NCBI GenBank assembly: GCA_965637545.1
Contig: OZ281495.1
Location: forward strand, 21,886,001 to 21,950,000
Reading direction: 5' to 3'
DNA length: 64,000 nt
Source of the DNA: Phallusia mammillata
Taxonomy: Eukaryota
Shown: one piece after another, positions 3,001-47,400 of the stretch
How positions within the stretch are numbered: position 1 is the first letter of the stretch
How the letters are laid out: every line of letters begins with the position of its first letter
Position numbers and translations under genes: made by a program
The notes under the pieces: model-generated
What the model was told of the DNA's origin: nothing
The model's database searches: none
Seen by the model: only the letters and a program-made list of their open reading frames with translations

Positions 3001-5312
3001 CGTCAAAAATGGTTTTGTCTCGCTCTTAACAAACCATCTTCACGTGACTAGTGTCATTTTGTGCCAAAGGTCTGTGATGCATCACAACAACGTGCACGCG
3101 CGATGAGGAAAGCAGCATGCGGACACCTGTTAATTAAATCACGCTGTTGTGACTTAAATCGTCCCGATCCTCCCTCTATGAACGCGCGCACTTGCATGAC
3201 TCTGCTTGCTGTTTGCAGTCAGAACGCAGTGGCGCGTTGGTGAATGTCACCTGGTAGTTGGCACGGAGCAATAGATGTGCAAGTGCTTGAAACCGTTGCA
3301 CTCGAATTCTGCCTATATTTCACGACCAGCACGCGACCTTCGCTTTCCCGCATGCAGGTGCTATTTCCAAAATTACTTACGCCTTTTTTTCCGGGACGCA
3401 TGGGCAAGACTCTTCACATCCAACGAAACACTGTTGAATATCATGCAGTCGCAGGTGACACCACTTGGTTACTCTTTAGCGCCCATTGGCGGCAAAGCAA
3501 TTACTTCATTTTCTTCGTATATGTGTAGTTGGGAAAGCTGATGCAACAGGTGGCGTGTGCCTATTATTATCCCGAAAACTATTGAACTTCAAAAGGTATT
3601 TTTGTTGTTTTCGTTCGGCAATTTCAATTAGGAAACAACTGCAACGCAGTATTGTATTGATAGATTGCAGAGTACGCTACCCGGGTGATAAAGTACAAGG
3701 TGTGAATTGAGTTAACGTTTCCTGCTGAACCAACTGCGTGGTTTCGAACCCACCTTTCACCTTAAAAATGATCGATTTCACTCGATCCTTATACAAAATG
3801 AGGCGATTCGTCAGAACCGCAAGTACTGCTGATATTTGAAGTGCGGGGAAACTGAAATTAAAGAATTCTTCGCGGAAAATCTTATGCATGTCCGCCGTTT
3901 CATCTCTCAGCGCTTGGCTGGCCAGCAAGTGACGCGAGACCCACTAATTGCTTTCTAATCTTTTGTTGAGCATTTTTCTTGTCCATGCACCCAAGGCGGT
4001 TGGTGTAGCTGGATGCCTGAGGTGCCGCTCACAAAGGTTGCCTGTCAGCTTGTCAATCAATTACCAGCACGGAACTTTGGCACTTGATGCCTGGGATAAG
4101 TGCTAATTGATCTGTTTAATTAACGAGTCGACTTTCTTCAGTGAACCTCTTGCCCCCAACGAGGTAAGGGGCTCAACGCTGCGGTTTACTGTGTGGGGGA
4201 TTTAGTTTTTGACAGCCAGACGCGAAATCTAGTGTTTATGCACAAAAAACAAAGTACCTGACGTTGAGATCAAACATAAGATCGATACAAATCGTTGTAC
4301 TATCGATACAGTTTTGGTTAATCATTTCAGTCTTTTTTGCGTTAAGAGAAAATCTCTTGCTGGTTTGAAGAGAGGTTTTTCAAATGTCATCGCAAAAGAT
4401 GCCGAACAGACAAACGGCGATTTCTGCATCACAGGTTTCCTGGAGGGGCGTGTTAACTTCGGAGACAGTCAGCTGACAAGAAATCAACAAAAGTAGGGAG
4501 CAGGTCGTGGCCGAACATTCTTTTTTCGCGCCACCACAACTGCGATAAAGCGGGCTGCCGCAACAGGCGTAAAAGTTCCTGCGAAAGCGTTGTTGTTTTA
4601 GCCAATTGCTTGTGTCAAAGCCCTACAACATGAAAGCGATACGGTGGCACAGATTCGTTCAAAGCAGGTCACCGCCTAGTGCCCCGCACGCCCGACTCTA
4701 ACCGGATCTACTTTCACCGTAATCTGCTCCCGAAAATGTTGGTACTCCACCATGGGGAGTCTGTAGCAGGACACGACCCTTGTTTGTGAAGAACGTGCGT
4801 TCACGAAAACTTGCCCATTAGACTAATACCCGATGATGGACGAGTTGCTTGCGTAACAAAACCTGTCACGTTTCAGGCAGCACTAACATATATAATATAA
4901 GGATAGAATAGCAAAAACAGAACTTTAACATTCCTACGATGCCTGGTGTTAATAAATCACATTTGAAAAATACTTGTTTAAAAACTTGTAAAAATCCGAT
5001 CAAGAACTCCCGGATATTTCGAATATGTTGTTCAGGATCCAGCTAAAAAGGAAATGTACTCTGGTGTGACATCTGGTTTCCAAACGCTTGCCACGTAACA
5101 GCTTAAGCCGTCATTTGCTCAGTTGCTCAGTTGCACAGGCATACTGCTCGCCTATGACGATGAAATAACAGGTAATTAGTATATTGCATTGTGTTGTATT
5201 GCTTTACATGCCGTGGAACGGAAAACGGATATGACGGCCGTATAGATAGAACATCGGAGGATCCTTCGATTGTATAGTCTCGTTCAGCAAGTTGGTAGGT
5301 GGAACAGACAAG

Positions 5313-8300
5313 ATGAATCAGGAAAGTTTGAGTTTGTTATTGGTCTCGATTTTATGTGGTTCCACATTTATTCAAGGTAAAGTGAAAAAAGAAATAGAAT
5401 TGTCTTGTTCCGTAGAAATTTGAACTGTAAGCATTCTATTAGGAAGTATGCCGACAAAGATGAAAACTTATAAGGACATGTAAACAAATTTGCCAAAGTA
5501 TATTGTCAATATATTGGCAGTACCTTTTGGGTGGGAGTTATTACTTTTGTTGGGAAAAGCCTATTCAGGCAAGGTTATGGGGCCTAATCATTTTATGTTT
5601 ATACTTTAAATAAATCGACATACAACATTTACAGGAACAGATATCCCAGATGCACACGAGATAGTTTATCCCAAAAAGGTTCTTCCGTCAGGTGAACTGA
5701 CATCGTCACTGTCGACCTACATCAACCCTGATGTAAGTCATATATAAAAAAAAAATATACATGTAACGGCATAGAAGTGACAAACTATTTGTTATTAGGA
5801 GAACGACGGTATGCATGAAACAAACTGTCGGTATCAGGTGGAATTCGAAGGACAAATCTACGATATCGATTTAGAACTTAACACTAGGATTGTGGCTGGA
5901 AAATTAACGCTCACGGATGGATCTAACGGCCGTACAACCTCTCCCAGCAAACAGGTTTGATTGAACATTTGTCATGCACAGGCTTGAAAACGACTCTTGT
6001 CAAAATACGCCAACAGGCGACGAAAAAACACACAATTACTTTTCACTGTGAGACATATAGATTTGGTGGATAAATTAATATCTTTGCTGCCACGCAGGAC
6101 ATCAACTACAGTCAGTACACCGGTACTGCAAGGAAAGTTAAGCAACCGCCCAGCAAGGAATTGTACGACGCCTATTTTGAAATTACGGAATTTATGGAGT
6201 AGGAAAAATGTTATATTAATTATTCACTGTTTATTACGCCCAACCTTTGCTACCTTTCTTAAAGGGGAATGATTGAGACTCCTGATACAATCGTTATAAA
6301 ACCATACAACATCGGCCATGTTGCATTTCGTCGTTCTGCAATAAAAGATGATGAGAAAATATTATGTGGCAATGAAGCTTTGGAGAAAGGAGAGATGAAA
6401 CAAAGAAGGGCAATGCATCAATTTTTAAGTACGGTGATTTATATTTGTGTGTGAGAATTTGTAACACAGGGTGCGGTAAAAGAAATAAGTTTTTTTTTAA
6501 ACTTTTTTTCCATGCCTTTTCCATGATTTTCCAAACTTGATTTTGTCACAATAATCACTCAAAACAAACTATTAAAGGTTATCTACAGAAACTAATTATA
6601 CCATATTAAGATCTGCCTGTGAACGAAGACTTCGTAAATGGGCGAGTAAAACGAAATTTGGAAGACAAAACAAAGTATCTTGAACTACTCATTATGGTTC
6701 CCTTTGATCTGGTGGGTCTGAATGAATTATGTTCGAAGAGGTCGGTAAAAATATGACAACGCATTATTTTCCACAGTTCCAATATTTTGGCGAATCTGTC
6801 CTCGACATGACAACAGCTATGCTGCGGTTAACGAACGCCATGGATTGCCTCTATAAACCGGTTGATATCCGAATCGTATTGCGACATATTGAGTATTTTA
6901 GCCAAGGAGATCCCATTCGTCTTGATTTGAACAGCTATTTAACAGTAAGGGCGTACGCATGAACTGACTGTATTAGATTCCTGGACTGGTGCCAAACAAA
7001 TGTGTGTGCAAAAATGTGAGAAATACAGTACAAAGCCCCGGATTTTTTATGATTGCCATTATATACGTTACGCTTTTATCAACGTAACTAAGTATGTTTT
7101 TACAACACATTGGGATTATTGGCGACCCCAGCAACAAAAAACTGCATTAGGTTTGTTCCCCTTGTTACACGTAATCAATCAGTCAATGGGTTCATTTTCT
7201 TGTTACAGACCGTGATTGCCGCGGAAGCCTACGTAAAAACTAGGATCCAGAGAGACCCAATGGATTCGCCTTGGCGAGATATAGACCACGTTATTTTAAT
7301 GAACAACGCCTCGTATGTCGAGATAACAACAGAGGGAAGAGTTCTTGGAGTAGCAAGGCTCTGGCAATTGTGTTCGGCACACTCTCTTTCATACATGGGG
7401 GTATGTACGTGAACTTGTAAATACTACTTAAATGTAAGTACAAAGAAAAACATGAAAAAAACGAACATTGAAGTATTTGTACTTGTAACACGGCATTGTC
7501 CTAACTGAATGACTTTCCAAAACCTTTCAAACACCGCGTGTCAGTTTACTAGTAAATTATAACAAACTGAAAAAAGGGGAAGTAATAGTTTCAGTTATGT
7601 TAAACTGTACTTAAATATGAAACCTATACTTGGCGTGCCATGAAAACTGACGTCGGACGTCAACGTGGCGTGACAGAAATTGTCAACCACTGGTTTGGGC
7701 GTAACGGTATTTTCCAAACCGAGTAGTTATGACTTTGTTCCTTCTGCGCAACTATAAATCCATTGCAATGTTGGGCAATGCACCTCGATTTTAATGGTTA
7801 CATGAAGATTTTAAATGGGTTTAGAATGGTTACATTTTAGTTCCAAGACGATGGACGAATGATTCGTGATTTGGTTGCCGTTCACGAGGTGGGGCATTCA
7901 ATCGGTTTACCGCACAATACTGCGGCCTGTGTTTGCGGTGAAGAAAACTGCATTATGAATGCCAGGGTTACAGTGTAAGTGGTAAAAGTATGAACTAAAA
8001 TATCAATCATGATCGTACATACTACGTCATTTTGAGTGTTGAACCAATCAAAAAGTAGCTTTTCATATACAACACGTAAGTCTAAATGTGATTATTACTT
8101 CTTTCAGACCCTATGCCTCAAAGTGGTCAAACTGCAGCAGGCTACTTATGACCCATGAACTTGAGTCAAGCACCGGAAGATGCTTACTAAATGTCCCCGA
8201 ACCTTCAATGCTCGAGCAAATAAACTCATGTGGAAACAAATTTTTGGAAGCTGGGGAACAGTGTGACTGTGGGACGGTGTCTGAATGCGAAAGGTCAGTT

Positions 8301-11300
8301 TGAGATTTAAGCCAATGAAACAAATCTACTGCCAAATATAGCATAGGAAACAACAAATATAAAACCTTAATCATGCAGCAAAAACAGCTCGGAAAAAAGG
8401 CACCAAGTAACCGACTAACCAAATTGTGTTGTGAAGAAAGACTGGAGGTCTTTAGACTACAAACAACCAATTTATTTAAGAACCCCCCCCCCAAAAAAAA
8501 AAAAACTTTGACGAATTGTAATAGTCCATCAGTTTGTGATTTGAATAAATATTTCAGAAATTAGGCGCGTTTTTGTTTCGCAGTTAGTGTTGCAATCCCC
8601 GAACCTGCCAGCTGTATGATTTTGCACAATGCGACGGAAGCCAGTCGTGCTGTAATGCAGCGACCTGCCGTTTTGCTACAGCTGGAACAATGTGTCGGAA
8701 ACCGTGCGATCCCGAATGTGATTTACCGGAGTACTGCAATGGAAACAATGCAACAGTATAAGCCTATTTTATAACACGCTGTTTTAATGACATTTTTTGG
8801 AAAGAACTTAGTTATGTGACCTGCAGAGAACACGCTTTAACAAGTATTAAACCCAAACCATAAGCTACGAATGCAACTTATCCGTTTACAAACTGAACTT
8901 ATACAAAATATAAATTGTTTGGCAGTGCCCGACAGACAAACGGGTCGAAGATGGAGCAGTCTGTAATGCTGGTCAAGACCGGTGCAAAGGTGGTTATTGC
9001 TTTACTCTAAACCGGCAGTGTGAACAGCGATTTGGAGCAGGTAAGATTCAGTTGATTTTTCTGCGCGGTTGACTGAAAACAACACCAAATACATCAATCA
9101 ACAAATCGCTAAAAACAAATATCGAGGTTTACTGTAAAATCTTCCTACATAAAGGTGCAACACAAGCTCCGGTAAACTGCTACGCATTAAACCTCCGGGG
9201 AGACGCATTTGGAAACTGTGGAGTCAACGAAACCGGTTCCTACATCCCTTGCAGTGTCGCGTAAGTCATCCTTTTGCCTTGTTTACGTGCAATATAAAAG
9301 ATGTTACACTGTGTTTTTCAAGTGACGCATACTGCGGTAAGCTTTCCTGCCAAGGTGCTGCGACAATATATCGACCCAGCAGCTTTCAAACTCAACATAT
9401 GTTTGCGAACTTTTCGGACGGGACTCTTTGCGTTGTTCACATAGAACCAGCCATTCCAGGAGTTTTTGACTTTAGCTACATACAAGACGGAAGTGGCTGC
9501 TTTGGTAACTCTGGGGTAAATGAATAATCTTGAGTTTGACTTACGTTTTGTAAGCTATTAACCTTAACGTCGCAATCTTATTTTTTCCGACACCTTGTAG
9601 ATCTGTGACAAGGGCAAATGTGACTTTTCGCATGTCTCTCTCTGCGACTCCTCATGCAACGGGGTAAGAAATTTCCCTTACTTCAATAAACTTATCATAC
9701 GTGATGAAATGGATACACTTGCATATACCACAGACGTGCAACGACGCTGGTAATTGCTTCTGTTCCGATGGATTTGCACCACCGAGCTGCACTGCGCCCG
9801 GAAACGGAGGAAGCATCGACAGTGGCCCTCCGCCCGTTGCAAATCCAAGTAGGACGTGTTGTTGTTGTACCATGCTTTCAGTTTAAACCCTAAACAAGTC
9901 TAAATAACGACGGTATTTCAAAATTGATAGACTGCGATTCATACAATACCAGTGTTAAATGGAATGATAACAGTGCAGCTGAAAGTGAAATAGCAGTGGA
10001 TGTCGTTTGTGGAAAGAAAATTATGATTAGGTATGTTTTGTGGTTTAAACAGTAAATTAGGTCTGTATAAGCCGCTTTCATTTATATTTTTGCTGCAGTT
10101 TTAACCTGTGTCCTTTCATTGCCCGTGGATATAACGTCGATGATTTGGTAGTGATCGCAGCAAATGAAGATTTCGATCCATTACAGCAAGTAAGTAGTCG
10201 TTGCCCAAACAATGTTACTCATAAACAGCGATCCTGTAGTTGTAGGCAAAACCGAAACGTGTAAACATATCACATTAATCGACTTAATTTTAAACAAAGA
10301 TAACCCGGTAGTGCTGCCACTGTTTTGTTAATCTCACCGACAATAACCACCAACATTATATAACAGAACGTAACTGTCGGAGATGAGTGTGTTGCCAAGC
10401 CCGGAGTTCTCGCAGTAGGAGAAAACTGGAGAGCTAGCATTGCGTTCAGCGTCGATGCCTGTGGTGGAGAAATGAAAGTGAGTTTAATTAAAACAATAAA
10501 TGTTTGATGGTAATCTATCGCAGGCTTTTCGAACAAAAACGAACCGATAGAAACAACCTTTCCATAAGTGCTAACAGTTCGCGTAACCTAAAACAATTCC
10601 ATTCTATCCTAGTCTGGAGAAACGTTTATCACCATCTCCAATCGATTTCGGGCAATCCGCACTGGTCGCACGGATGCTACGGAAACGATTGTCAGAGTTC
10701 GTCCAGAGGTTATCTACGACTTCTCCTGCAAATATGAGAGATCTCTCTACATGCAAATCTCGGCCCATCCAAACAAAAAGTAAGACAAGCGTTCCAAAAA
10801 TCTAAAAAACAAATCCTACGCTGATGCTAGGAAACTTTTTTTTGAAGAAATTTATTAGGCTACGAAGAGGCGCACAAGTATTACGAGGTCAAACTGTCGT
10901 TTTTTGCGGACGCCTCTTACGAACAAAAACTTCGGGTCGACCGGGATATTGTGGTTGTCGGAAACCGAGTGTTCGTACTGCTTGAAATACAAGAAGATAG
11001 CCCAAACCTTGTGCTGCAGGTTAAACAGAAATCCTGTGCGATGTTGCCACTCAAAAATGACAAACTGTAATAATGTCCAAATTTTCAGACTACGAAATGC
11101 TGGATATCACATGTAGCAGACGTTGAAGCAGAACCTCTTTACCACGTCATTGAGGACAGGTAAATTACCCCATTCCAAGTGTAACGTTTTTTTTTCGTGG
11201 TCTTTAGCCTACTTCAGCAACCACAGCTTTGGTGAAAGAATTTATCAAAGAACATACTTATACGTGTAGGGAGCATTTAAGAAGTTCCATGTGTTTTTGA

Positions 11301-11710
11301 ATATGCGCAGATGTCCAGATGTAGATCAGCTTGGGGAAGTTGGGGCCAATGCCATGAGTCAAAATTGCGTTAATCACCAGTCCAGATTTTCCTTTTTGGC
11401 ATTTTCCCATCCAGTGGGAGCAAACGCCAAGGAGCTCCATCTACACTGCAAAGTGCAGACCTGCCAGAATAACTTATTCGACTGCAGCTGTCCAGTAAGT
11501 TATCACAACTTTTATTTTGTCAACTCTTCTGTTTTCCAGCAATAGTTAATTTATTGTAGCTGTCATAGCATGAGCCGTTGCCAATACAAAACATTAAAAT
11601 GTCGATATTTTTTTCAGGTGTGCGACAATGTCAGACGTAAAAGAAGTCACGAAAGCAGTTTTGGAATCGAGAGAGTACTGTCGATTGGACCGTTACTGCT
11701 AAAGCGTTGA
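5313..11710 (+). CDS. Secreted ADAM metalloprotease-disintegrin fused to a C-terminal ZP module, copy 1 (24 exons; possible premature stop at 8585-8587)
   Basis: Hand-spliced exons: signal MNQESLSLLLVSILCGSTFIQG (5313-5376); prodomain HEIVYPKKV and Cys-switch-like KILCGNE; furin RVKR (6643-6654) then TKYLELLIMV; HEVGHSIGLPH (7883-7915) and Met-turn CIM; disintegrin CGNKFLEAGEQCDCG...ECDLPEYC; Cys-rich FGNCG, CGKLSC; EGF and GGSIDSGP; ZP motifs VVCGKKIMI, DACGG, FSCKY, KCWIS, RFSFLAF, LHCKVQTC; final exon VCDNVRRKRSHESSFGIERVLSIGPLLLKR*. Confidence 0.9.
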
Positions 11711-11763
11711 CCTAAAACTTAATTGAGTCATGTATTACATGTGGTGTGTTCTAGTGCTAGTTA

Positions 11764-11769
11764 AATAAA
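11764..11769 (+). terminator. Polyadenylation signal AATAAA of ADAM-ZP copy 1
   Basis: AATAAA about 55 nt after the TGA stop at 11708-11710. Confidence 0.6.
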
Positions 11770-12036
11770 ACACATACCAGGTCAAATCAAGCTTTTAGAT
11801 AATTACAGAGCTAAAGTAAAATATTTGTAGTTGGTTTAATTTGTCCAAGAACGCACAATGTTCAACTTATTCGGAGACGGCACATTTCAATCAATGTGAC
11901 AGAAAGACTGCAGTGGGAAAACAATATTTCACAGCTCACATAAAAAAATTATCTCACGGATAGCCCGGATGTAGAGACAACGTCAACTGTTATTTTGAAA
12001 TGTAGTATTTAGTCAGTTATTTGTCTTGTTATCAAC

Positions 12037-15000
12037 ATGGTGTGTTCCACGACATGGTTTCAAATAATATTTATATTATTTCTCAATGGTAGGTATTTGT
12101 TTTGTTTGCAACTTAATTTGTTTCAGATAATAATACACTACAGTTGGTGTTATTTTTTGTACCGTTAAAATTATTGCACTGAACCACAAAAAAACAATTG
12201 ATTAGTATTACAATACGGCAAGTATTATTACCCATTTTTGTGGGGTATGTCAGGAGTAAGTTTAGTTGATTCACGTTTTGTTTACGTATTGTAAAAGTTG
12301 AGTGCCATAAATGAGATTAACAACACACGGTTCCGTTAAAGACATCCATCAGAAAGGGGATTTTAGGTTCGGCATGATTCGGCCGAAATTATGTGACCAT
12401 GTAGTTGAATATTTCGCTTCGGGCCGAATCTTTTGGGGTGGGATCGGTACATCAGTAATTATAACACTTGAGCAATTCGTTGTAAAAGAAATACTAGTAT
12501 ATCTTATCGCTTGCAATTTATTCTAAAATTATTGAGCAGCTGTTCTTTGCATTTTGCACAAACTTTGCATACTGCAAAGCGCTCGTGCGATGAAAATTTA
12601 CCACACCTATCCAGTGTTTTTTTAAGGTGTTTTGGGGGACCGAAACGGTCCCCCAAATTTCTCCAGCGGTTTCCCAAAATTGCCAGTAGCCTAATAAATA
12701 ATTCGTTTAAGCAAATATGGCTATTTTTTGGTATTTAAATGAAATACTTGCGGTCTCCTAAAACTACTTAGCGGTCACCCAAACCAAACCTTAAAAAAAA
12801 CCTGCACCTATCTATCAACAGGGCTGAACAAGGCGGCGACAAACTTAAAACCCAATAAACTTCAAGATTACGAAGTTGTTTATCCGAAACAACGAATTAA
12901 TGGAGTTTGGAGTAATGATCTATCGACAAAAACCAAAAATACGGTTTGATATCTTTAAAACAAAACAATTTCCGAGGTACAACAAATGCAACATTTTTTT
13001 CCAGAACTATGATGGTTTTCACAAAAAACATGTGATCTTACAGCTGGAAACAATGGGTCGCGTTTTCGAGTTAAAACTAACCCTTAACTTGGATATCCTT
13101 GATGAACTATTGGTAACAGTGCACGAGTCCTCCGGAAAAGCTTCGTTTCCGGACAGAAAAGTTCGTTTTAAGAATTTTTGTAACTTTACCATGTGTTTTT
13201 AATGCTCATTACGTTACAGAATATGAATTTTTGTTTTTATGGCGGCAAAGTGTTTGAATATGAAAAGGAAGTAGGGATGGTTGCAATGAAAACGTGCGAA
13301 GGACTGGAGTAAGTCACTTGTAACTCTCAAATCACCACAAACTTTATTTCAGTCGTAATTATACAGAGGTTACCTCATGATTAACGACCTTAATGAAACA
13401 ATAGTCATAAAACCAGATGTTGAAAACGCTAACCGACACATTACTCAACTCGGAGAAAAGCTACCTGAAGGAGAACTCAAACAATGTTTCCAACTTGACA
13501 TGTCAAAAACACTGGACATCGAAATGAGTATTTTTTAATTTTCTTAAAATGTATGTTAATTTCCAAAAAAATCTTAAAGTTTCGTTTATAACTTGAGCTC
13601 CTAAACCAACAAATCGGCAAGGCAACAAAAAGTGAAGTTTAAGCGCAAAATGGTTGTTGCATCTTACATATCCTACCTCTTTAGCGAATAAACCTGACGT
13701 TGTCGCGTGCATTCATTTAAACATTGTTGCGCTTAGATCGTCCCAATCTCAGAAAAAGGCGAAGCGTTTTAACAGAGATTAAATACATCGAAGTCATGTT
13801 TGTCATCACATTTGATCTGGTAAGACGTTTAAAAGTAGTTTAATCGGATTCAAGCAATGAAAACTACTACCTAAATAAATAAGTTTTATGCGTTTGCAGT
13901 ATTCTAACTTTGCTGAAAACCAATTGAAAGAAATGATGTTTGAATATGCTAATGCCATGGATTGCCTATTTCAACCGATAAACATTAGGATTGTCCTAAG
14001 CAGCGTAGTGTTTTTCGACAAACAGTATTTGTTCAATGTATCATCACCTTTACAGGTAAGATTTTTTCCGTTAATCGCTAGACAACAAATGCAAATTACT
14101 TAGTTGTAGCATATGCAGTTAACATTATGCATGTAAGCATGTTAATGCGGTGTACAACGAGGAGAGATATATTAAGTGCGGTGTTCGACAACAAACTTTC
14201 CACAGCCCTTAAGTAGAAATAAAACCGTCCCCTTAACAAAACACCACAACTTCGCACTTTCAATATAATTTCAATGTCACCAGACTTTATTGGATTTTGC
14301 TGAATATCGTCTGCTTCAACTTGCAAAATCATCGGAAAACTCTTCCTGGCACAAATCCGACGTATCGATTTTGCTCTCATACGGGTCATACATAGACAGA
14401 GACAGCACATCGTCCACGCTGGGGATTGCTTTTCCCACACAAATGTGTCAAACGTCTTCAGTAGCCTACAGCAGTGTAAGTTGCATCGTCATGAAGCTGA
14501 CGGTCACGGTCACTTTAATTTTCCAAACAACCAAGCCTGGTGTGTATTAGGTCCGAAAAAATAACCGATTACCATTCGTAACTACACTAGTTCTGGTTCA
14601 CGAAGTTGGCCACGTGCTTGGAATACAACACGACAAAGAAAACTGCGTTTGTGAACAACCGTACTGCATGATGAGCGCCTATTTAAAATCGTAAGTATAT
14701 TTATGCTATCGATAAAAATAAATTTACAATCATTTTCGAAATGTGCGTTTTCGAAAAAATCTCAACATTCGAGTTTCATAGTTGTTTAAAACAGATTAAG
14801 TCAGACACACTGGTCCAACTGCAGTAAGCAGGAGTTAAACCTCGAACTGGAGATAAGCACCGGTGCATGTTTACTCAATAAACCTACTTCGATGCTGCCG
14901 ACCGTTGAATGCGGAAACAAGTTTGTGGAAGCAGGTGAAGAGTGCGACTGTGGCACTGCAGAAGAGTGCAAAAGGTAGAGTAAGATTTACTGCTGGGTAT

Positions 15001-18000
15001 CATCGTGAAAAGTGGATGTGTTATTAGACCTACTTAAAATCTATACCACATACGTCAACTTTATACTGTTAAGTTAGAAAACAACCTTCTTTTGATAATT
15101 GATAAAAAAGATCAAAGATGAAAGAATATGTGTTTTGCCTCAGCCGTTCCAACAACACACATACAAAGTTCGCTTGGGTCATGAGCTAAAAATATGACCC
15201 ATGGCTGTAAATACTTGTCGCATATTTTTATGATTACCAGCGGCGCGTAAAGACTGGTGACTGAAATTGAACGTTCACATAGGATAAAAAAACGCCCTTT
15301 CTGATAAAACATCTGATTGAAGGCCTTCTTACCATTGCAACAAGATACAAATCACAAATTCCCACCACAAGAGCTACAACAATGAAGTAAAATGTATCAC
15401 GACATGTAACTTAACATCAGGATCTATTGCACAAAACTATGAACCAATCTTAACAAAACTAGAAACAGTATTTTGATGTAGTCACTTTAAATAAAATGCG
15501 TATTCAACTCAGCTTTTGTTGCAATCCACACACCTGTAAGTTATGGGAATTTGCTGAGTGTGACGAGGAAGCTTGCTGCGATCAAAAGACGTGTAGGAGG
15601 GCGCCACCTGGTGTTCTGTGCAGGGAGCTTTGTGATCGTGATTGCGATTTGCCGGAGTATTGCGACGGCGAAAATGTTATGGTGCGTTCGCTGCATTAAA
15701 TTACATGATACTTTGCTGCTTCCTGTCACTAGCTTCTACAAATATTTTTTTGTACCAAACACATTTGTTAAACTACACAGTAAGCATCAATTGCTGTTGC
15801 GGCGTAACAAACCTTTATAACTGCGTTTTCTGGATGCATTGTAGTGTCCAGCGAATAGGATTGCGATGGACGGAACATGGTGTAATTCGGGAATGGACCT
15901 CTGCAAAGATGGGTATTGTATGACAAGGGATAAGCAGTGTGGGATAATTTTTCAAAAAGGTGAAAAAAATATTTTGTTCGTACAATAAAATTTGACAAAC
16001 CTAATTTTTTGTATTTTCTTTCTTGAAAAACACTTTTTGCTTTGAATGTAACCGCAGGTGCTGTAAAGGGGCACGAGTTGTGCTATCTCTTGAATGTAGT
16101 TGGATTTCAAGGAGGCAACTGCGGAGCAACAACCAACGGATCATTCATACCCTGTTCTTTGGAGTAAGTCCGGTATATTGTACTAACAGTTTCTTTGCAA
16201 CAAAGCCATATGCTTATACACTAAGAAAGATAGATTCCCCTAGTAATCCGTTTCATAGGCGCCGAGTAGGCGGTGGCGGGCTTGCGCCGTCCCCCTGGGT
16301 TTGTCAAGCACGGTGGCGGCCAGCGTGTAAATTTGGGTTAGTTTATAGCCGTATCGTACGAAATATCGTAAAATCTGAAGAATATTAACAACAATTGTGC
16401 CATTTAACGAGCGTGCTGGCGATTCAGCCACAAAACTTGGCTAAAAACTGCAACTTGTTGTGGTTAGTGCCTTGTTTATGACGTTTAACACACAATTGTC
16501 TCAGTGAATGTTCGGCCATTGTTGTGTACAATGCAAATGTGTTGTAATAAATGGTTATCTAACGTGATTTAAAGCAGCAACAACTTGACGAAACACTTTT
16601 GAACGTTGCTAAACCAATAATAAACGCTACAGCAACATGTTGCAATTGCCAGCTAAATATTATTTCAAACATATTGCTTTTTTCTTCTAATTTTGACGAA
16701 CGTTGCATTCCATGGAAAGTTTGGGCTTTGAGTTCTTGTGGTTGTACGCATTAGTGACGTCACACAAAGTGACGTCATATTTTACGTCCACCACCTTGCT
16801 TTTTTGCAAAACTCGGCGCCTATGGTCCGTTTTATATTTACTAGCTCCTACTTAATGGTTGATTTCATGTCGCACTTGGATTTACATATGTTACTCAGCA
16901 CAAATGTTTCTCAATACGTGTGTGTTTAACCTAGTAACGCTTTTGTTATTCATTCTTTTAATTTGGAAGGACACGTAGGTGAAAAGCACGAAATACGTTT
17001 GTTAATTTCACAATTATGCCAAACCATCAAAGCATCGTGGAAACTGACATTATCTGACCGAAACACGTAAAGCAACGACTGAACATAAGTAACGGTTAAA
17101 TACCTTAAAATGCACTAATGAAAGGAGCGTAAAAGAAACGTGCCTGTTCCCTTTAGGAAAGGGTGTCTATGATGACAATGAACCTAGCTGGCTTAAACCA
17201 CGCGGTCGTTAATTGCCATATTTTTTATCAGCAAGGTTGTATTATGTTTTCAACAACAGAAACCAGGATTGTGGAAAACTGTTTTGCGACAATGTTACTG
17301 GATTTCGTGTTATGCAATCAATGAACTCGTATGGTGAAATACTAAACTTTTCTGGACATGCATGTACGTATGCACACACACCAGAAACCCCAGGAGCAGA
17401 CGCGTATTACGTAAAGGATGGAACAGCATGCAGCACAAACGGCGTAAAATGTTTAACAATATTAACTGTTGAAAGAAAACGTTTTGTTATGTTACGTAAT
17501 ATTAGTAAAACAAGAGGTACAGTTCGATAGATTGGCATAAATAATTTTTTGTCACATTTAAATTTAAAAGAGAATTCATTTGATGTTGGTGTTCTCAAAC
17601 ACCATGAGATATATTTTTTCGCCAGCAACACTACGACGGCGCATATCAGTTCACAAAGTTGTAAAAATTATGAACGTTTAGAAACGCTACAAACGTTTTG
17701 TTTAGGTTTGCAACCAAACTGTATGTGAAGAAACGCCTTTAAACGTTTGTCCCAATTGCAGCTTGGCAACAGGGGTAAGTCAAACGTATTAAATGAAGCT
17801 CACGATATAATCGATCGTTAACCTTTACGCAACTAAAAAGGGAGAAAATGCCTTTTTTGATTTCACAACATTATGTGAACCTGTAAACAAAGGCTCACAA
17901 ATACTAAGCGTTATAATTTACGACTATACCTGATAGGTTTGCAATGATATTGGGCACTGTCACTGCCATCCCTTCTACAAAGGAGAAAATTGCAGTGTAT

Positions 18001-20166
18001 TTGACCCATCAGCTGCCGGAGGTAGTCCCGAGAGTGGCCCAGCACCTTTGTCTTTTCCAGGTACATGCAAAAGCATTTTCGTTCATTACATCCCACAAAA
18101 TGTGGTTTACGTATTTTTAGATTGCTCTGGCTACAATGTGACAGACAAATGGGATTCGTTTTCAGACATTGTATCTGAAATCAACCTAAACGTAATGTGT
18201 GGTATGGTGACGTACGTAAGGTAGGAAATGTAACATCGTATACAGGACAAAAAAATATCAAATTACTTATTTGCTGTATGTTATCATGCACTTATTTGTG
18301 TTATTATCTTGAAAATGCAGTTTAGATCTTTGCCCATTTATTGCTCGAGGGTACAAGGTTGAGGATCTTGCTCTGTATGACAGGAATTTGACTTTTAATC
18401 CCTTGTTTAAAGTATGATGAGCTTTGCCTTTGGTTACAAACTTATTTTTGGCTTTTATACCTTAATTTATTGTTTTGAGCTGCAAAATGTTCAACCGGAA
18501 TGTGTAATGCAGTCAGAACCATTTGTGGAAGTTGCCGCGCCAAGAGGGAAAATCGTAATATCCAATACTTTGGCTCTTGAACGTTGTGGAAGTCAAGTAA
18601 AGGTAGTGTACTGCCAAAACAAAATGAATGTGGCGGGGGTTGCACGAAATTAGACCAACAAGGATCTAACAAACAACGAAATGATTTAAAATATGACATA
18701 AGATCAAAACAATCAGTAAAAAATAATAGATATTTAATACGTCCGATGCATTTATACCACAATATATAACAGACAAACGGAAGCTGGACGACTTTTACAC
18801 ATCAATTACGAACAATTAAACCTGCAGCAGTCGACACGAGCAACACAATTGCAAGATCGTCCCCAGCGTTTATCATAGACATTGCCTGCACTTACGACTC
18901 GGAACTGACTGACATAATTAAAAACCGACCTATTCTTCGGTAAATAATTCATCCATACAGTAGCATACAATAGCGTTTTTATTAGGGCAAATTAACACAA
19001 TTATCGCTTCACTGTATAATCATATTACAACAAAATATGACCTCAACGTTGAGTAAAACAACATTTTTTTAATTTTATTAAGAAAATTAAATAAGTTTTG
19101 TAGTTAACCTGGCAAATACTTTTTTGGTCTGACATTAGTTGTACATTTTTGGAGCAAAAGACCGTGAATAACTACTGGTTTTTATTTTTAATTTGTTCAG
19201 GTGTACGTTGGACGCTGATATATCACGCGTTGGAAGCCAAGTTTTGCAACTACAGGCTTACCCCACTAATTTGTATGAGGAGCCTTATAGCGAACGACAA
19301 CCAACACAAATCTCGGTGGGAGAAAGAGTTTTCGTCAAGGCTGAACTAAAATCATATTACACAAAGCTAGTGTTGCAGGTGTGGGTGTAAAGCCAGAAAA
19401 TTGCGCCAGAAACGCTCTTAAACTATTATTTTTAGTTGATCAACTGTTGGGTTACCTCAGGTCCTTCACCAAACGACCCGTGCGCATTTAACATCATACA
19501 AAATGGGTATCTATGCTCATATACTTATATTTTTGTGTGTTGTTGTTATCATCCGTTTTACTAGGTGTGCCGTATCTGATGCCCTAGGCGTTGCAGGTGG
19601 AAATATCGTTTACAACAACTGTTTCTCAATGCATGCCAATTTTTCCTTTGTTGCCTTTTTCTGGGCAAAGTTACCTGCACAAGAAATGTACCTGCACTGC
19701 CAGACCCGCGTATGTCACAGAGATACGGAGGATTGCTCATGTCCGGTCGGTAGCAATCTGTGCAAGTATAGTAGTGTATAATTTCTGTAAACACCAAAAA
19801 CCAAACAAACTAAGAAGTTGTTAACGTGGTAAAACCTAATGGTTTGATATACATTTAACGTTTTTAAACATTCTGGGCAATAAACAACAAGTTCGTATGT
19901 CGTAAAAAAAATTTCACGTTTCGTTATATTTGCTACCGTCCTCATCAGGACAGTGAAACCAAGGGTTTAACTTGTTGTCTCGTAAAACAGTAAGAAAGGG
20001 TTGATGTAAAATTACAAGTTAAAGCTATTTCTTTTTTAAGTTCTTAAAAGATAATCTTAAAATTAAGTGTTATTTACAGAGTTGCAATGCAAAACGACGG
20101 CGCAGATCAGTTCAAAACAGAAATGAAATTACCAGCAGCCTGGGGCCCTTTACTGTGAAAAGATAA
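12037..20166 (+). CDS. Secreted ADAM metalloprotease-disintegrin fused to a C-terminal ZP module, copy 2 (24 exons, apparently intact)
   Basis: Signal MVCSTTWFQIIFILFLNG; DYEVVYPK; NFCFYGG...KTCEGLEG; furin RKRR then IKYIEVMFV; HEVGHVLGIQHD (14599-14634) and CMM; CGNKFVEAGEECDCG...DCDLPEYC; GGNCG, CGKLFC; EGF and GGSPESGP; ZP motifs VMCG, ERCGS, IACTY, NCWVT, NFSFVAF, YLHCQTRVC; last exon SCNAKRRRRSVQNRNEITSSLGPFTVKR*. Exon structure matches copy 1. Confidence 0.92.
12612..12804. mobile_element. Non-autonomous hAT-type MITE in intron 1 of ADAM-ZP copy 2
   Basis: TIRs CAGTGTTTTTTTAAGG / CCTTAAAAAAAACCTG; perfect 8-bp TSD CACCTATC; related inverted copy at 63090-63235. Confidence 0.88.
16254..16824. 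mobile_element. Non-autonomous hAT-type element in an intron of ADAM-ZP copy 2
   Basis: 14-bp TIR CATAGGCGCCGAGT / ACTCGGCGCCTATG; TSD ATCCGTTT / GTCCGTTT (7/8). Confidence 0.85.
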
Positions 20167-20198
20167 TTTTGGCTTTTGAGTTTTTTGTTTATTCTGTG

Positions 20199-20204
20199 CA
20201 ATAA
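20199..20204 (+). terminator. Polyadenylation signal AATAAA of ADAM-ZP copy 2
   Basis: AATAAA about 33 nt after the TAA stop at 20164-20166. Confidence 0.6.
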
Positions 20205-20501
20205 ATATTTAAACAGTTTGGCGTATAAATTAACGTTTTGTGGGAGGTATATGGTAAAACATGTGACAGATCTTTGTTTAATTTAACAAAAAACGAACAT
20301 GTTTTCGTAAAACATGTAGTTTGCAATAACTTATTAATTAACTTTGATGTAAAAGAAAACATCACTCTCAGTTTAATGCAGGTCGTTTATTTTTCATATG
20401 TTAGTGCCGATGAACAACAAATGATTAGTTTTAGACACACGTGCAAATGGCTTTGAATCAATAAGCATGCAAAAGCTTGGTTTCGTGACGACAGCTAAAC
20501 T

Positions 20502-22429
20502 TTATCCTTGAGCCCTCAAGTAGCGAAGAAGCTGTTCAATAAGACTGCGAAGTTGATCGCTGGTCAAATCATTAGGCTTTTGGTCTGGTTTTGACTTCGG
20601 TGGCATGATTGTGGACTTTGCAGGCCCACCCTGGCACTGACGACGACAGAGCGAGTACTTTCGACCGGCCTCAAAGCTCTTATACCCACCAGCAGGAACA
20701 CATTGATCGCAGGTTGAGCAGTCGACAGTCTGTGGCTGCTGTTGGCGACCTTGTTGCAGTTGCTCGCGAGTGCAGTCGCCGGGACGAAGGTTTGCCTGGG
20801 TCGCTTGCTGTTGACGAGCGAAAAAGTTAAAAAAGGGAAAACCACTGTTAGTGCCCTGTGTGGACGGCGCCTGTCTTCCTGCAACACGCTTCTCTCCTGG
20901 ACATTCCGACTTAAAACCCTCAGATGATCCACCCAGTCCAGAAGGCCTTTGGCCATTGGGTGGTCCAAAACCGAAACGAGGTCTGTTTCCATAGGGAAAC
21001 CCTTGGCCACCACTAGGAGGTCCACGACCACCGCTAGGAGGGCCGCGACCACCACTAGGAGGCCCGCGACCACCAAAGAAACTTCCCATGTTGTCTGGTC
21101 GGGCGTTCTGGCCCCGACGGTTGGTGCAATTCGGCAATTGGAGAAGACCGCATTCCAAGCAATCGCAGCATCTGCAATCACAATTTTAAACGAATTTATA
21201 AACGTATAAAAGTAAACATATCAGGCTAACTGTGTCTTACCGGGGCTCAAGAGGAATTCCTTTAAAGCAGGGAACAACATGGTCTCTACCATTGGTTTCG
21301 CCAAACAAAGAAACATAACGATATTGCGACGGATCATCGTTGGGCTGAACAAAGAAAATAGCAGTGTTATAAGTGCAACAAAGTGTTTAGCATTTTTGTT
21401 CTTACCATAAAACCACCACACTCGTCTAGAACTTGCTTGATACCATCGTACATATCCGAGTCATAAATTGGAAATCCGTCTTCTGCCACGCCAATAATGT
21501 GAGGAGTGGTGGGGTCGTATGGAACACCTAGGCACCTTTATTTAAAGGTATGATATTTTTAACAACGGAGATAACAACAAAATTCTTAAAATTAGAAGCT
21601 ACATTCTGTTCCCAAATTATTTACTATGGTGTAAAAATATCACAAGGTAAAAATTATGTTAAAAAATCACACTGCTTAAAAAAACTCACGATAGTGCCTA
21701 CAAATTGCATCAAAAAGCAAAAACTTACGTGGTGTTTGGTGCACGATGAAAGTGATATTCTCCATGAGGGCTAGGATGGCCATTGCAACCATCAAACGTA
21801 CCCTCGGGCATGCTGTTCACATCCACACAGTCCGCTTCAAGATGATTGTAAAAGGCTGTTCCGCTCGTTGCAAACCCTGTGAAAAATATTTTTCTATTTA
21901 AACGCGTTAACATTTTATCATAACACATTATTGCTGGAATAAAAGTCGAAGTTTTTACATAGTCTTTAAGTTTTTAAATATCCTAAAACTAGCTTTGAAA
22001 AGTGTCAACAACATAGCCGGTTACGTACCAACAGACCCCATTGGAGCACAATAAGTTTCAGTTCTGGAAGCAACTGGGGAGCGTGGAATAATCATTGATT
22101 TGGCACGGGTGCAGATTCTTGCATCAGGTCGGCAACAGTTCATATCAGTGTTGTAGCAATCACCTACAGAAAACAAATGTTTGGAACTTTTACAAAACAC
22201 GGTAAATAGATAATATTGCATACACTTTTGACTTACTTGTTTCATGTTCTGGAACACCACTGATTGTTATCTTATAGTTTCCCTCAAATTTCTCGATGGT
22301 AAAAGCACTTGTGTTACGAATCGATCCTTGCAAGTTGTACTTCAAGATAAAGAATTCACGATCCGTAAGTGCCAAAGAACCAGTCACCAAACTTAGGACG
22401 AACACAAAACGCAAGACAGAGGCCAACAT
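20502..22429 (-). CDS. Secreted YHYH-domain protein with Gly/Arg/Pro-rich and Cys-containing C-terminal tail (6 exons)
   Basis: Signal MLASVLRFVFVLSLVTGSLA; spliced frame gives ITISGVPEH, PMGSVGFATSGTAFYN, FDGCNGHPSPHGEYHFH, IIGVAEDGFPIYD, LDECGG, QYRY, PCFKG, matching the motif series of the YHYH family; last exon is the 20502-21158 ORF frame. Confidence 0.82.
21005..21075 (-). repeat. Coding 21-bp tandem repeat x3 (GGRGPPS)
   Basis: GGRGPPSGGRGPPSGGRGPPSGG in the last exon of the YHYH gene. Confidence 0.85.
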
Positions 22430-33525: not shown

Positions 33526-34713
33526 ATGGAGACCGATCTAGATTCAAAGCCTTTGTGTTCCGTTTGTAAATTAAAAGAATTTAAATATACCTGTCCGAGA
33601 TGTAACATACAATACTGCTCCACCTCTTGCTACAAAGCTCCTGGTCATTTTGCTTGCTCAGAATCATTTTATCAGGAATGGTTTGTTCAAGAAATGAAAG
33701 AGCGCAAAGTTTCCTTTAGCGAACAAGAAAGAGTTTTGTCAATGTTGCAAAGAGTTGAAGAAGAGACTCCAATTGATGAATATATGGATCAGACTTCAAC
33801 CCTTGAGGAAAGACTTCAGGCATTAAACTTAAGTAGTCTCAAAGAAAAAGACACAGAAAAACTTTGGGATATTCTTACACCAGACGAAAGGGAACGGTTT
33901 AAAGCCGCTGTACAAAAAGGAGAAATTTATGATTCCTCTGGCTGTTCATTAACACAGCCATGGAAACCTTGGTGGACAACAGCTAAAAGCTTGATAGAAG
34001 ACATTAACAAGCTAAAAGATATTTCTTCGGCCCTTTGTCCAAAAATCATCAAAGTGCCCGAACTTATGTCTTTGTTGCCAAAAGGCAAAAATCTATCACC
34101 ATTGGTTGCATTCAACCTTGTTAACACACTATACCCTTATGTTTTATTTCAACGATTATATAATGGTTGTGGTACTAGTGATTTTGTCAAAGATTTTAGT
34201 TGTTGCTGCATTAAAGCGTCACTTTTTCTTGACCAGAATCAAACTTTTTTGAATGCTGAAGAGGCCTTAAACAGTGCCATTAGGTTTTCAGCAGATACAT
34301 GTCAAAATGAACATATTTCTGTAAAGGAAGCAGCACTGACAGAAACAATAAAAGATGTAGGTCAAATTTTAACTGGACCTGCAGAGGACAAAATGTCTGA
34401 CTATATATGCTCTGCTTTGTCTGATTTACACTTTGCATGCAGTACACATAAAAGAAGTTTAAAGAAGAACTCAAATACAAATCAGGGTGATGGATATACA
34501 AGTGCAAAGCAATTGTTTTCTATCATAAAAAAGTTGGAGTTTCTTATTTCATGGAGCTCCCATCAGAATGCATGTCTTCCTCTCCTTGCAATGGAAGTTT
34601 TTGAAATATACAAACAAAAGAAAGCGGAATTAAAGGCTTTTTTGGAAATAAGTCAATCCGTAGTACGCAAACCTAACACACCAAAACCGCCACTCATTCA
34701 GGAAATAAATTAA
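33526..34713 (+). CDS. ZNHIT2: Zinc finger HIT domain-containing protein 2 (intronless CDS)
   Basis: 395-aa ORF with N-terminal zf-HIT CSVC...YTCPRCNIQYCSTSCYK..H..CSESFY, then LWDILTPDERERF, WKPWW and C-terminal KKLEFLISW...PLIQEI, typical of ZNHIT2. Confidence 0.9.
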   Translation: METDLDSKPLCSVCKLKEFKYTCPRCNIQYCSTSCYKAPGHFACSESFYQEWFVQEMKERKVSFSEQERVLSMLQRVEEETPIDEYMDQTSTLEERLQALNLSSLKEKDTEKLWDILTPDERERFKAAVQKGEIYDSSGCSLTQPWKPWWTTAKSLIEDINKLKDISSALCPKIIKVPELMSLLPKGKNLSPLVAFNLVNTLYPYVLFQRLYNGCGTSDFVKDFSCCCIKASLFLDQNQTFLNAEEALNSAIRFSADTCQNEHISVKEAALTETIKDVGQILTGPAEDKMSDYICSALSDLHFACSTHKRSLKKNSNTNQGDGYTSAKQLFSIIKKLEFLISWSSHQNACLPLLAMEVFEIYKQKKAELKAFLEISQSVVRKPNTPKPPLIQEIN

Positions 34714-44468: not shown

Positions 44469-47400
44469 TTAAGCCTTCGATCGGATAGAGATTTGATTTT
44501 TCAGTTCCAAATGCACAAACTGGTGGTTGGTGTACTTTACAACCGGTTTCATTGTTTTACAACGATGGTAGGCGACAAAACCGACAGCAGCGATGATAAG
44601 AAGACCGACAACAGCGATGCAGCTGGCGATAACTTTCGTATGTGTAGAGTGCTTTTCCGTTGTAACGTATTCCGCTTGCGTAAGTTGCACAGTGGCGTTT
44701 GGATTACCTCCCTGTGATTTTGCACTGCGTCCGACCGACATTACTATCATGTAACTTGCGAAATCATCTTCATGGACATCTCTGAAATACAAACACAAAT
44801 TAGCGAACAATACCAATGTGTGTTTTGATCAAACAATTTAGCACAAGGGCTAGATCTTATAGTATAACATCGATTTTGTAGTTTTGTGATACGATTTTAG
44901 TGGAATTATATGCTTTGTAAGTCTTACTCGAAAGTAACTGACGCTTGAATTTTAACACTCTTTGGATTTCGTTCGTTGCCTTGTGCAATGTGGCTGAAAC
45001 ACGGTAAGCGAACCATCGTCCTACAACAACAACAAAATCATCAAATAAGAATAACAGTACAAACAATAGCGGGTGTAAATTTCAAGTAGAGCAAATCGTT
45101 AATTTGTTTAATCGATTCATTAGTTTTAATTTAACGCCATTAGTTAGTGCCCAAAGTTTAATGGATTGAGCGGGTGTATTTTTTTGCTACTATTAATGAA
45201 AGCTATGAATGGATTCAAGGTTTTTATTGGTTTACAGCAAACAAACCCTAGAATATTTTTTGTACTTACGCGTCGCAAGAAATGTTTCCAGAAAAATATC
45301 GTGCTGAATTGCTCAGCAAACTTTTGAAGCATAGCATAGAAACGTTGTTGTTTGTATCAATCTGCAATGACACAAATGGTATTAAAACGTGTAAATTGTG
45401 TAAAACAAGATTTTCTCTGGACGTACCTTCATCCACCGAACAGATGCCATGAAATAAGGAACGTCGTAGTATCCCAAGTCCCCTGTGCAGTTTAGTGAAA
45501 CTCGAGATCCTACTTTTGCAGGAACGACGCTTTTCGTGCATTTTACAAGCACGCGTGAGAAAGACGAAGCCTCTGAAGAATTGAAATGTAACATTAAATT
45601 AACTTCTAACACGGTTAAATTGCTGACTCACGTTTCACGCAGACAGGATAATGTGTTACGTACTGCGTCTGCCCGTTGTGCGTCACGGCACAGGTGTAGA
45701 TTCCCGGATGTTCGTACGTGATTGTGTTAATATGCATCTGACAAAGAAAGTATAAAGGTTGAATCAAAACATTGTGTTTAGAGCAGGGGTGTCCAACTCG
45801 AACACACCGCCGTGCCAAATTTTGTTTTAGAATATACTCGCGTGCCACTGTTTGGTACTTTTTCCATACCATTTCTTAAACGTCCTAACGTGACGGGCTC
45901 AATTTATGATACTCCAAAAACTTTTTATTATGTTTATGCGACACAAGCTACAAATAGTTTGCAACGGGGCTTAAGTTTTGTCAAAAAACGAACAGTTTAA
46001 TTGGTGGGTTCGGTAACTTTACTAATTTTTACTCAAGTTAGAATAATCATCTGAATTTGCAAAAGCTGGTGTGCCATTTTCAAATGCTCTGCGTGCCACT
46101 TTTGGCACGCGTGCCACGTGTTGGACACCCCTGGTTTAGAGGCAAAATTTTGCTGTTATTGAAGATCCGTAATGTGTTCCATCTTTCAAACAACCGTGTG
46201 AGTAAATAATGTAAGAAATTGGACCAATTTTATCATTTTTTATGGCATGTTAAGGATGGTCTTTAATATTTTACAATGTAAAGTACTTAAAATATGTCCT
46301 CTAAAAGTCTAAAGTCCTCTAACACAATGGTTACCGAACTTTTTCATATTTTTTTCAAAACGGTCCCTTTGCCATTATTTCGAGGGCTCGCGGTCCTTAA
46401 GCCTCAATGTGTATTTCATAAAAACGGAAGTTGATTGCAGGATTTTAGCTAGTTATGCAAAATTGCGCATAACACTCATCCAAAGACATCACAAACAGGA
46501 CAAAAAACATTACGATTGTGCGCGAACAATTGCATTTTTGATAGTTGTCATTCAATAAAGGCCATTGTTTAGCAATGGAGACATTCGATTCTCAATTCTA
46601 CTTTGATTTAATCTTATTTAGTGGCACAAACTGACGCCAAATAAGATTATAGAATTACTTCAACTGCTTTGCGGTCCCCCCAAAATTGCCTCACGGACCC
46701 CTAAAGGACCGCGTTTGGGAACCGCTGCTCTAACATATCTTCTGCCTACCCGGGGTTTGTTGGAGTAAGCTGATTTTCGATAATTCTCGTTTCCAACTGC
46801 GGTGCAGTTTCGCAACCACGTAACATTTAATAAAGTTTGTGCGTGTGCAGAACTCCCTCCTTGCAGATCCACATCATCTCCTAGTAAACAAGAAATACTC
46901 AGGTTAAACTAATAAGTCTAATTTTACGGCATTGTAAAAAAATGTGTCTCTACCTGCACATTCCAGACTTATAGTTTTGCCGATGCTCGCTGAATTGAGT
47001 TGTTTTCGACCAAGGTTGCTTAATGCCTCTTCGCATGTTTGTTCTTGTAACGTGGTAGCGTTGACAAAAATTGGCTGAGCCCAGCACGTCGATGACGACT
47101 GTTAGATAGAAAAATAAGCTTATGTGTTGATTTTGGAAAAATGATAGGAAATAGGATTGAAAAACATTTGAATTGTGACTTAGTTTGTAACAAAATACAG
47201 TTGTCGGGTCTTGTTTAGAGGGAGGATCGTACATTGCAGTCTATGTATTTGTGTCTATGGCAAATTTTGCCTTGGTTCTAGTTTACTTTTTTTCGAAAAA
47301 TTTTTTTTTCTGTTGTTTTACAACAATAACTTTAAATTTGCTGTAAATTTTGATTCCGACCTTTAAAACAACAAGAAAGTGTCGTGGACTAGCTTTTTCA

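Follow-up and report, generated by a model that had tools for sequence, protein, structure and literature searches.

The cleavage of zona pellucida (ZP) matrices is normally the work of separate enzymes, such as ovastacin, hatching enzymes and hepsin, and ADAM metalloproteases are normally tied to the membrane. To our knowledge, no characterised ZP filament subunit is itself an enzyme. Here we consider a tandem pair of genes, G1 and G2, in a 64,000-nt stretch of DNA from Phallusia mammillata (assembly GCA_965637545.1, contig OZ281495.1, positions 21,886,001 to 21,950,000 of the forward strand; hereafter the window, within which all coordinates are given). Each gene joins an ADAM-type metalloprotease to a ZP module, which stands where the membrane anchor would be expected. 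The window sequence contains no N, and no further ADAM-ZP copies were found in its 64,000 nt.

The ADAM B-group (ADAM12/19/33 and, in Ciona, ADAMc1) offers the nearest comparison for the protease. G1 and G2 have the same domain order from the signal peptide to the GGSxxSGP motif and the same phase-1 intron after the EGF exon, but they carry ZP-N and ZP-C domains, a furin site and an external hydrophobic patch (EHP) instead of a transmembrane (TM) segment and cytoplasmic tail. M12B proteases without a TM segment are known among the secreted adamalysins (ADAMTS, ADAM12-S and the P-III snake venom metalloproteinases), but these lack a ZP module. The C-terminal ancillary domains of ADAMTS proteins serve targeting. 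The alignment of G1 and G2 accounts for their whole length as ADAM plus ZP and leaves no space for thrombospondin type 1 repeats, and nothing points to a venom or toxin role. A 2007 Ciona survey described all ADAM genes as having a TM-type structure (PMC1867822).

On the ZP side, the pair resembles the uromodulin (UMOD)/GP2 type, with EGF directly before ZP-N, a full ZP module, a cleavage site, an EHP and an Arg in the fg loop. Unlike G1 and G2, UMOD is anchored by glycosylphosphatidylinositol (GPI), needs the membrane to polymerise and carries no enzyme; its FXF motif is only partly kept in the two ascidian proteins. In UMOD, cleavage at the consensus site frees the EHP and permits assembly, polymerisation requires both R415 of ZP-N and the FXF motif of ZP-C, and the N-terminal domains project as branches from the filaments (PMC7737619). 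Soluble ZP precursors (the liver-made egg-envelope proteins of fish, amphioxus BbZP2-5 and Oikopleura oik20) are without a membrane anchor, like G1 and G2, but none of them carries a protease. Those of fish lose the EHP by cleavage and assemble at the egg. Like G1 and G2, the Lingula astacin ZP_LINUN (UniProt A0A1S3KFN6) pairs a metzincin catalytic domain with a ZP module at its C-terminus; it is listed as S-PRO-CD-CUB-5xEGF-ZP (PMC9848320, supplementary Table 1). Because this protein, unlike G1 and G2, belongs to the astacin family (M12A) and comes from a brachiopod, it most likely represents an independent fusion. We found no study of it, and it is known as a database entry.

Both gene models were assembled by hand from positions 4500-21500. 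All introns are GT-AG and measure 57-1096 nt; the intron phases of G1 and G2 are identical at 23 of 23 sites, and 21 of the 23 introns lie within two alignment columns of each other. The proteins are 35.8% identical, with a peak of 55% in the disintegrin domain and values of about 30-35% across the protease part and the ZP part. Given the common intron phases and positions together with this identity, the pair points to an old tandem duplication after which both reading frames were kept open. The first-pass annotation of this DNA had placed two such genes here, and this is confirmed, for G2 as a predicted gene model; the start of G2 had to be corrected to about 12037, where, among phase-1 candidates for the first exon, the best hydrophobic one is predicted.

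For G1, a single spliced mRNA links the protease exons with the last exon. Sequencing reads were compared over a 6-kb stretch of G1 that does not include exon 1, the run type (RNA or DNA) being an assigned guess. Contigs of runs X1, X2 and X5, from two studies, skip every listed G1 intron at the modelled boundaries, and at least 15 joints were seen. Among these is 9848/9931, the junction between the ADAM and ZP parts, which is thus present in spliced contigs of three runs. Single contigs of 3127 and 3252 nt begin in the protease exons and end near 11782, a little beyond the AATAAA at 11764. The record offsets across the contigs, 648 and 221 nt, agree exactly with the summed lengths of the modelled exons, which leaves no place for a hidden TM exon in the G1 mRNA; the view that the ADAM and ZP exons share one message, with no TM exon after the EGF exon, therefore holds for G1. 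The corresponding G2 junction (18060/18121) is predicted to be used in the same way. Several RNA-type runs contain about 40% of the words of 7800-11800, which is close to the exonic share. Expression of G1 may be restricted, since other RNA-type runs of the same species contain none of these words.

One reading of the locus would be that separate ADAM and ZP genes had been wrongly joined, or that G1 is a pseudogene. An in-frame TAG in G1 exon 11 could suggest as much, as could the predicted G2 junction and the guessed 'RNA' run type. However, the 8293/8584 junction is used by RNA-type contigs, four of four runs have C at 8586, and with this base the G1 frame is open. The fusion junction is crossed by spliced contigs in three runs while a deep, unspliced DNA-type run (X9) shows no joints, no separate signal peptide is encoded by the ZP exons, and the two copies share the fusion. 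The spliced contigs and the reads at 8586 refute an artefact for G1, and for the locus as a whole we give it next to no probability.

The TAG itself is most likely an assembly error. This is the simplest reading because C is found in all four runs, including X9, and because X9 mismatches the window twice more; a rare allele is the alternative, at lower probability. X9 is near-identical to the window and may be the source reads of the assembly; in 6 kb the two differ at 5899, 7559 and 8586 (two substitutions and one 1-base gap). Given such local base errors, stops elsewhere in this assembly need read checks. A 4-nt slide of the intron, which could rescue the frame on paper, was rejected, since 8293/8584 is the junction in the contigs and their base at 8586 is C.

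In both proteins the ADAM domains follow one another in the usual order. Pfam scans, run exon by exon, gave matches to Reprolysin, Disintegrin (E 2-3e-11) and Zona_pellucida, and weak matches to the propeptide, ADAM_CR and EGF families. Up to GGSxxSGP, G1 and G2 align with ADAM12/19/33-type proteins at 28-33% identity over about 500-700 aa. The predicted signal peptide is the most hydrophobic 19-mer of each protein. The zinc motif and the Met-turn are intact in both, so the earlier designation of these proteins as zinc proteases stands at the level of the sequence motif. A prodomain furin site is present in G1 and G2, as is a candidate cysteine-switch Cys, which in G1 lies off its usual column in the alignment. 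Together with the alignment and the local profile described below, the scans confirm the proposed order of signal peptide, prodomain, M12B, disintegrin, Cys-rich, EGF, GGSxxSGP and ZP-N/ZP-C in both genes. In a tree of ADAM-B-type sequences, G1 and G2 form a sister pair on a long stem, as a clade of their own with support of 100/100; the tree was built without tunicate ADAMs and without an ADAM10/17 outgroup, and long branches leave the deeper placement unsure.

Several further features mark these domains. Exon 4 of G1 (6098-6198) is without both prodomain cysteines that G2 exon 4 (13220-13308) and ordinary ADAMs retain, which is consistent with the joint loss of one disulfide. In the first long catalytic helix (6777-6944; 13900-14055), both proteins carry a Cys that ordinary ADAMs do not have at this position; both are also without the Asp that comes after the first strand of the catalytic domain. 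The helix Cys and the missing Asp are shared derived features of the pair.

The membrane anchor is gone. A TM-like stretch within 70 residues after GGSxDSG is present in 103 of 109 ordinary ADAMs, and in neither G1 nor G2 (best KD19, 1.31 and 1.49). No membrane anchor, TM or GPI, was found at the C-terminus of either protein; a stop and a poly(A) signal follow, and in G1 also the RNA end. In three genomic ADAM loci of other animals (L012, L016 and L040), a phase-1 donor 13-19 nt after the motif is followed by a TM-type exon. In G1 and G2, the phase-1 intron comes 22 nt after the motif and ZP exons follow instead. We infer from this correspondence that an ADAM-B-type gene exchanged its TM and tail exons for an eight-exon ZP cassette at the ancestral phase-1 intron, and that the tandem duplication came afterwards. 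A TM exon or read-through within the fusion intron was considered and rejected: read-through in G1 stops after 12 codons, the G2 intron is 60 nt long, and the G1 mRNA has no extra letters. The initial proposal that the ZP module stands in place of the anchor is thus upheld. At L012:14461-14462, the pre-TM phase-1 intron of an ordinary ADAM gene appears to have a GC donor.

The Pfam family Zona_pellucida (PF00100) matches exon 23 of G2 at E 2.5e-7, above the cut-off, and exon 23 of G1 at E 3.4e-5; ZP-N has no Pfam match when exons are scanned singly. A local hidden Markov model (HMM) built from natural ZP modules spans both ZP-N and ZP-C, with scores of 74 and 80 bits. The four ZP-N cysteines and those of ZP-C all line up with natural ZP modules, giving the full ZP pattern in both proteins, and Atlas gave 0.90-0.94 for the module. 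Exactly two RxK/RR sites occur per protein, one after the prodomain and one after ZP-C, and the stop codon lies 21 (G1) and 19 (G2) residues past the second, so that both proteins stop shortly after a furin site, as first described, with an EHP between the two. The EHP, at the extreme end of both proteins, matches the consensus ..s.GPl.. (here xGPL/F) despite 36% identity; this consensus, with that of the ZP cleavage site, is given in PMC9692296. In the fg loop of ZP-N, a hydrophobic triplet followed by Arg is kept in G1 and G2.

Both copies also have an extra Cys just before ZP-N and an extra Cys within it (9931-10189; 18121-18411). By analogy with uromodulin, in which a disulfide bond links EGF IV to ZP-N, these two cysteines may bond together. 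The segment after the extra ZP-N Cys is unusually conserved (53% over exon 18), and ZP-C holds additional, unassigned cysteines as well.

How might such a protein work? We lean, by a little, towards a zymogen that is soluble, closed by two furin-type locks, and able to join ZP filaments with the ADAM head on display. The prodomain would block the zinc site at the N-terminus, and the EHP propeptide would block ZP assembly at the C-terminus. After secretion, cleavage of both locks at the destination would release the active protease and free the ZP module to join filaments as a co-subunit, whose partners would most likely be other ZP proteins or the paralogue, the ADAM head forming a projecting branch. 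The ZP module would thereby take over the job of the anchor, fixing the protease to an extracellular mesh instead of the cell surface. Joining or docking on a ZP matrix, as first suggested, agrees with the furin site, EHP and fg-loop Arg that both proteins keep, and this Arg corresponds to UMOD R415. Anchorless ZP precursors that assemble after EHP loss exist in fish egg envelopes, which by analogy also favours filament joining. Several points weigh against it. UMOD and the mammalian egg-coat proteins need membrane anchoring to polymerise, and UMOD cut after the EHP is secreted but fails to polymerise (PMC7737619). Moreover, G1 (FSH) and G2 (FFW) retain the FXF motif only in part, and an AlphaFold model of a single exon reached a predicted local confidence (pLDDT) of 43.

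The lack of the membrane anchor that UMOD needs, the imperfect FXF in both copies and the additional ZP-C cysteines would also be expected if the module did not polymerise at all. It could then be a dimerisation element or a substrate-docking exosite that directs a soluble ADAM towards ZP matrices or growth factors without incorporating it, in the way that betaglycan and endoglin use their ZP modules to bind ligands. We consider this unlikely, though worth keeping in view: the furin site, EHP and fg-loop Arg are retained in both old paralogues, and a removable EHP is hard to explain without assembly, although the EHP also helps secretion.

Alternatively, G1 and G2 could build free-standing protease filaments or nets of their own, as homopolymers or as a G1/G2 copolymer, for instance in feeding mucus, the gut lining or the tunic surface. 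The module resembles the UMOD/GP2 type, with a linker that aligns without large gaps, UMOD is the closest solved structure to the tunicate-like match P0015, the tandem genes could be partners, and ZP and zinc-protease proteins both occur in the Oikopleura house (PMC3390340). However, UMOD homopolymerisation depends on the membrane, and a Ciona gut-membrane proteome paper has no ADAM or ZP term in its text or supplements; we regard such a net as improbable.

Still another arrangement would have the ADAM head act mainly in adhesion, which is a role of many ADAMs, or be released, the precursor yielding a soluble ADAM and a structural ZP subunit. A precedent for release is ascidian HrVC120 (processed to HrVC70), where cleavage falls between the EGF repeats and the ZP domain (PMC9265791). 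With no furin-type site between EGF and ZP-N in either protein, and the zinc motif and Met-turn intact in both, we think this very improbable.

For the filament-joining zymogen, the tissue can be suggested by analogy. The egg coat and hatching are plausible sites of action because in Ciona GM6001 delays hatching and prevents both metamorphosis and penetration of the vitelline coat (PMC6353882). Mucus or tunic appears about as plausible; in the Oikopleura house, the ZP and zinc-protease proteins are separate (PMC3390340).

Ciona may already hold a relative. Judged by eye, ADAMc2 (JGI ci0100140827, at chr_12p:381811-388419 in JGI v2; PMC1867822, supplementary file 2) has furin and catalytic motifs similar to those of G1 and G2, no hydrophobic TM segment after GGSxDSGP, and a terminal motif resembling the ZP-C Cys5 strand. 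ADAMc1, by contrast, has a TM segment and a Pro-rich tail (also by eye). In the published ADAMc2 model, which was taken for an ordinary ADAM, the EGF exon is followed by only about 60 residues. From this visual comparison, we put at roughly even the chance that ADAMc2 is a truncated or mis-modelled ADAM-ZP orthologue with a ZP tail.

Database searches were run with single exons, and that they returned no protein with both ADAM and ZP parts is thus a moderate negative. A ZP-C exon profile searched against 1.84 billion representatives gave 17 matches, none below 1e-30. None of the 17 aligns to the ADAM part, and the ten that were scanned with Pfam are ZP proteins without ADAM domains. The ZP-C exon of one paralogue finds the other at only 37 bits, versus a threshold near 36; because it barely detects its own paralogue, orthologues could be missed. 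The ZP-N exon had no match in metagenomes, the disintegrin exon had none, and ADAM exon 10 found ordinary ADAM loci with no ZP match nearby. PF00100 is absent from all 120 ADAM12/19/33-type proteins among the matches listed. Automatic annotations of other ascidians may already list the architecture.

Two candidates were set aside. P0017, similar to G1 and G2 at its C-terminus, is preceded by a C-type lectin and not by an ADAM: on its metagenome contig (L079:630-1935), a C-type lectin open reading frame lies upstream of an anchorless ZP-C that has, like G1 and G2, an extra Cys before the FXF strand and a terminal CxC. Ascidian ovochymase, considered as a protease-ZP protein, was dropped, as no ZP is listed for it in a review. 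Full-text literature searches, with subscription papers outside their coverage, found no description of an ADAM-ZP protein. The first-pass annotation, which had named no characterised ADAM-ZP protein, is thus borne out within searchable full-text papers; the broader metzincin-ZP fusion has a precedent in Lingula A0A1S3KFN6.

Elsewhere in the window, a multi-exon gene on the minus strand (20502-22429) lies tail-to-tail with G2; in its last exon, which has no Pfam match, there are Gly-Arg-Pro repeats and a few Cys pairs. A single open reading frame of 395 aa (33526-34713) has an N-terminal HIT zinc finger (Pfam E 1.3e-9) and is probably a ZNHIT-family gene. Ig-domain exons occupy 44469-57142 on the minus strand, with a weak Ig_2 match at 48641-49087. 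The features of G1 and G2 are collected in Table 1.

Table 1. Coordinates of the two ADAM-ZP genes and their features within the 64,000-nt window
Feature	Position	Strand	Basis
G1, ADAM-ZP gene, 24 exons, 1038 aa	5313-11710	+	gene model; joints backed by spliced contigs; length arithmetic
G1 exons 1-12	5313-5376, 5635-5732, 5799-5954, 6098-6198, 6265-6428, 6611-6711, 6777-6944, 7209-7400, 7841-7974, 8108-8293, 8584-8755, 8926-9040	+	
G1 exons 13-24	9155-9260, 9323-9515, 9601-9663, 9734-9848, 9931-10030, 10099-10189, 10367-10477, 10613-10779, 10848-11019, 11089-11159, 11311-11494, 11618-11710	+	
G1 exon 1, signal peptide	5313-5376	+	predicted; protein's most hydrophobic 19-mer
G1 prodomain, candidate cysteine switch C174, furin site RVKR (6643-6654)	5635-6654	+	weak Pep_M12B_propep match; alignment to ADAM12/19/33
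G1 zinc motif HExxHxxGxxH (aa 363-373); Met-turn at aa 387	7883-7915	+	motif in model
In-frame TAG, G1 exon 11	8585-8587	+	C at 8586 (Ser codon TCG) in 4/4 runs
G1 disintegrin, Cys-rich and EGF exons; GGSxxSGP (9806-9829) near end	8584-9848	+	Pfam and alignment
G1 fusion intron, phase 1	9849-9930	+	removed by splicing in 3 runs; homologous to pre-TM intron of ordinary ADAM genes
G1 ZP-N and interdomain linker (exons 17-20); C736, C781, C805, C849; extra C711, C747; fg-loop Arg838	9931-10779	+	local HMM, alignment
G1 ZP-C (exons 21-23); FXF position F-S-H	10848-11494	+	Pfam, alignment
G1 last exon: furin site RRKR (11633-11644), EHP (11684-11695), stop; no TM or GPI tail	11618-11710	+	
G2, ADAM-ZP gene, 24 exons, 1031 aa, frame open	12037-20166	+	predicted gene model
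G2 exons 1-12	12037-12088, 12822-12943, 13005-13160, 13220-13308, 13367-13527, 13737-13819, 13900-14055, 14284-14475, 14551-14690, 14795-14974, 15513-15681, 15845-15959	+	predicted
G2 exons 13-24	16058-16163, 17260-17443, 17706-17774, 17937-18060, 18121-18220, 18321-18411, 18480-18602, 18773-18939, 19201-19378, 19436-19506, 19565-19745, 20080-20166	+	predicted
G2 prodomain furin site RKRR	13751-13762	+	motif in model
G2 zinc motif HExxHxxGxxH (aa 354-364), then Met-turn	14599-14631	+	motif in model
G2 fusion intron, phase 1, 22 nt past GGSxxSG as in G1	18061-18120	+	predicted
G2 ZP-N, linker and ZP-C (exons 17-23); fg-loop Arg832; FXF position F-F-W	18121-19745	+	Pfam, alignment
G2 last exon: furin site RRRR (20095-20106), EHP (20140-20151), stop; AATAAA at 20200	20080-20166	+	

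From the perspective of protein evolution, G1 and G2 apparently represent an undescribed architecture that joins two known families, real and, at least for G1, expressed. The fusion also exemplifies, in a clean form, exon shuffling at the ancestral phase-1 intron that precedes the TM exon. It is possible, although we hold it at somewhat less than even, that ascidian ADAM-ZP proteins, Ciona ADAMc2 included, form an old conserved subfamily of catalytic ZP-filament subunits in the egg coat, mucus net or tunic, activated by two furin-type cuts. The identity of the GM6001-sensitive ascidian metalloproteases needed for coat penetration, timely hatching and metamorphosis (PMC6353882) is unsettled, and G1 and G2 may be concrete candidates. 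If true, a protein that is both ADAM and ZP would be a self-remodelling matrix subunit, by which the matrix carries its own remodelling enzyme, and would show in nature whether a ZP module can assemble without an anchor.

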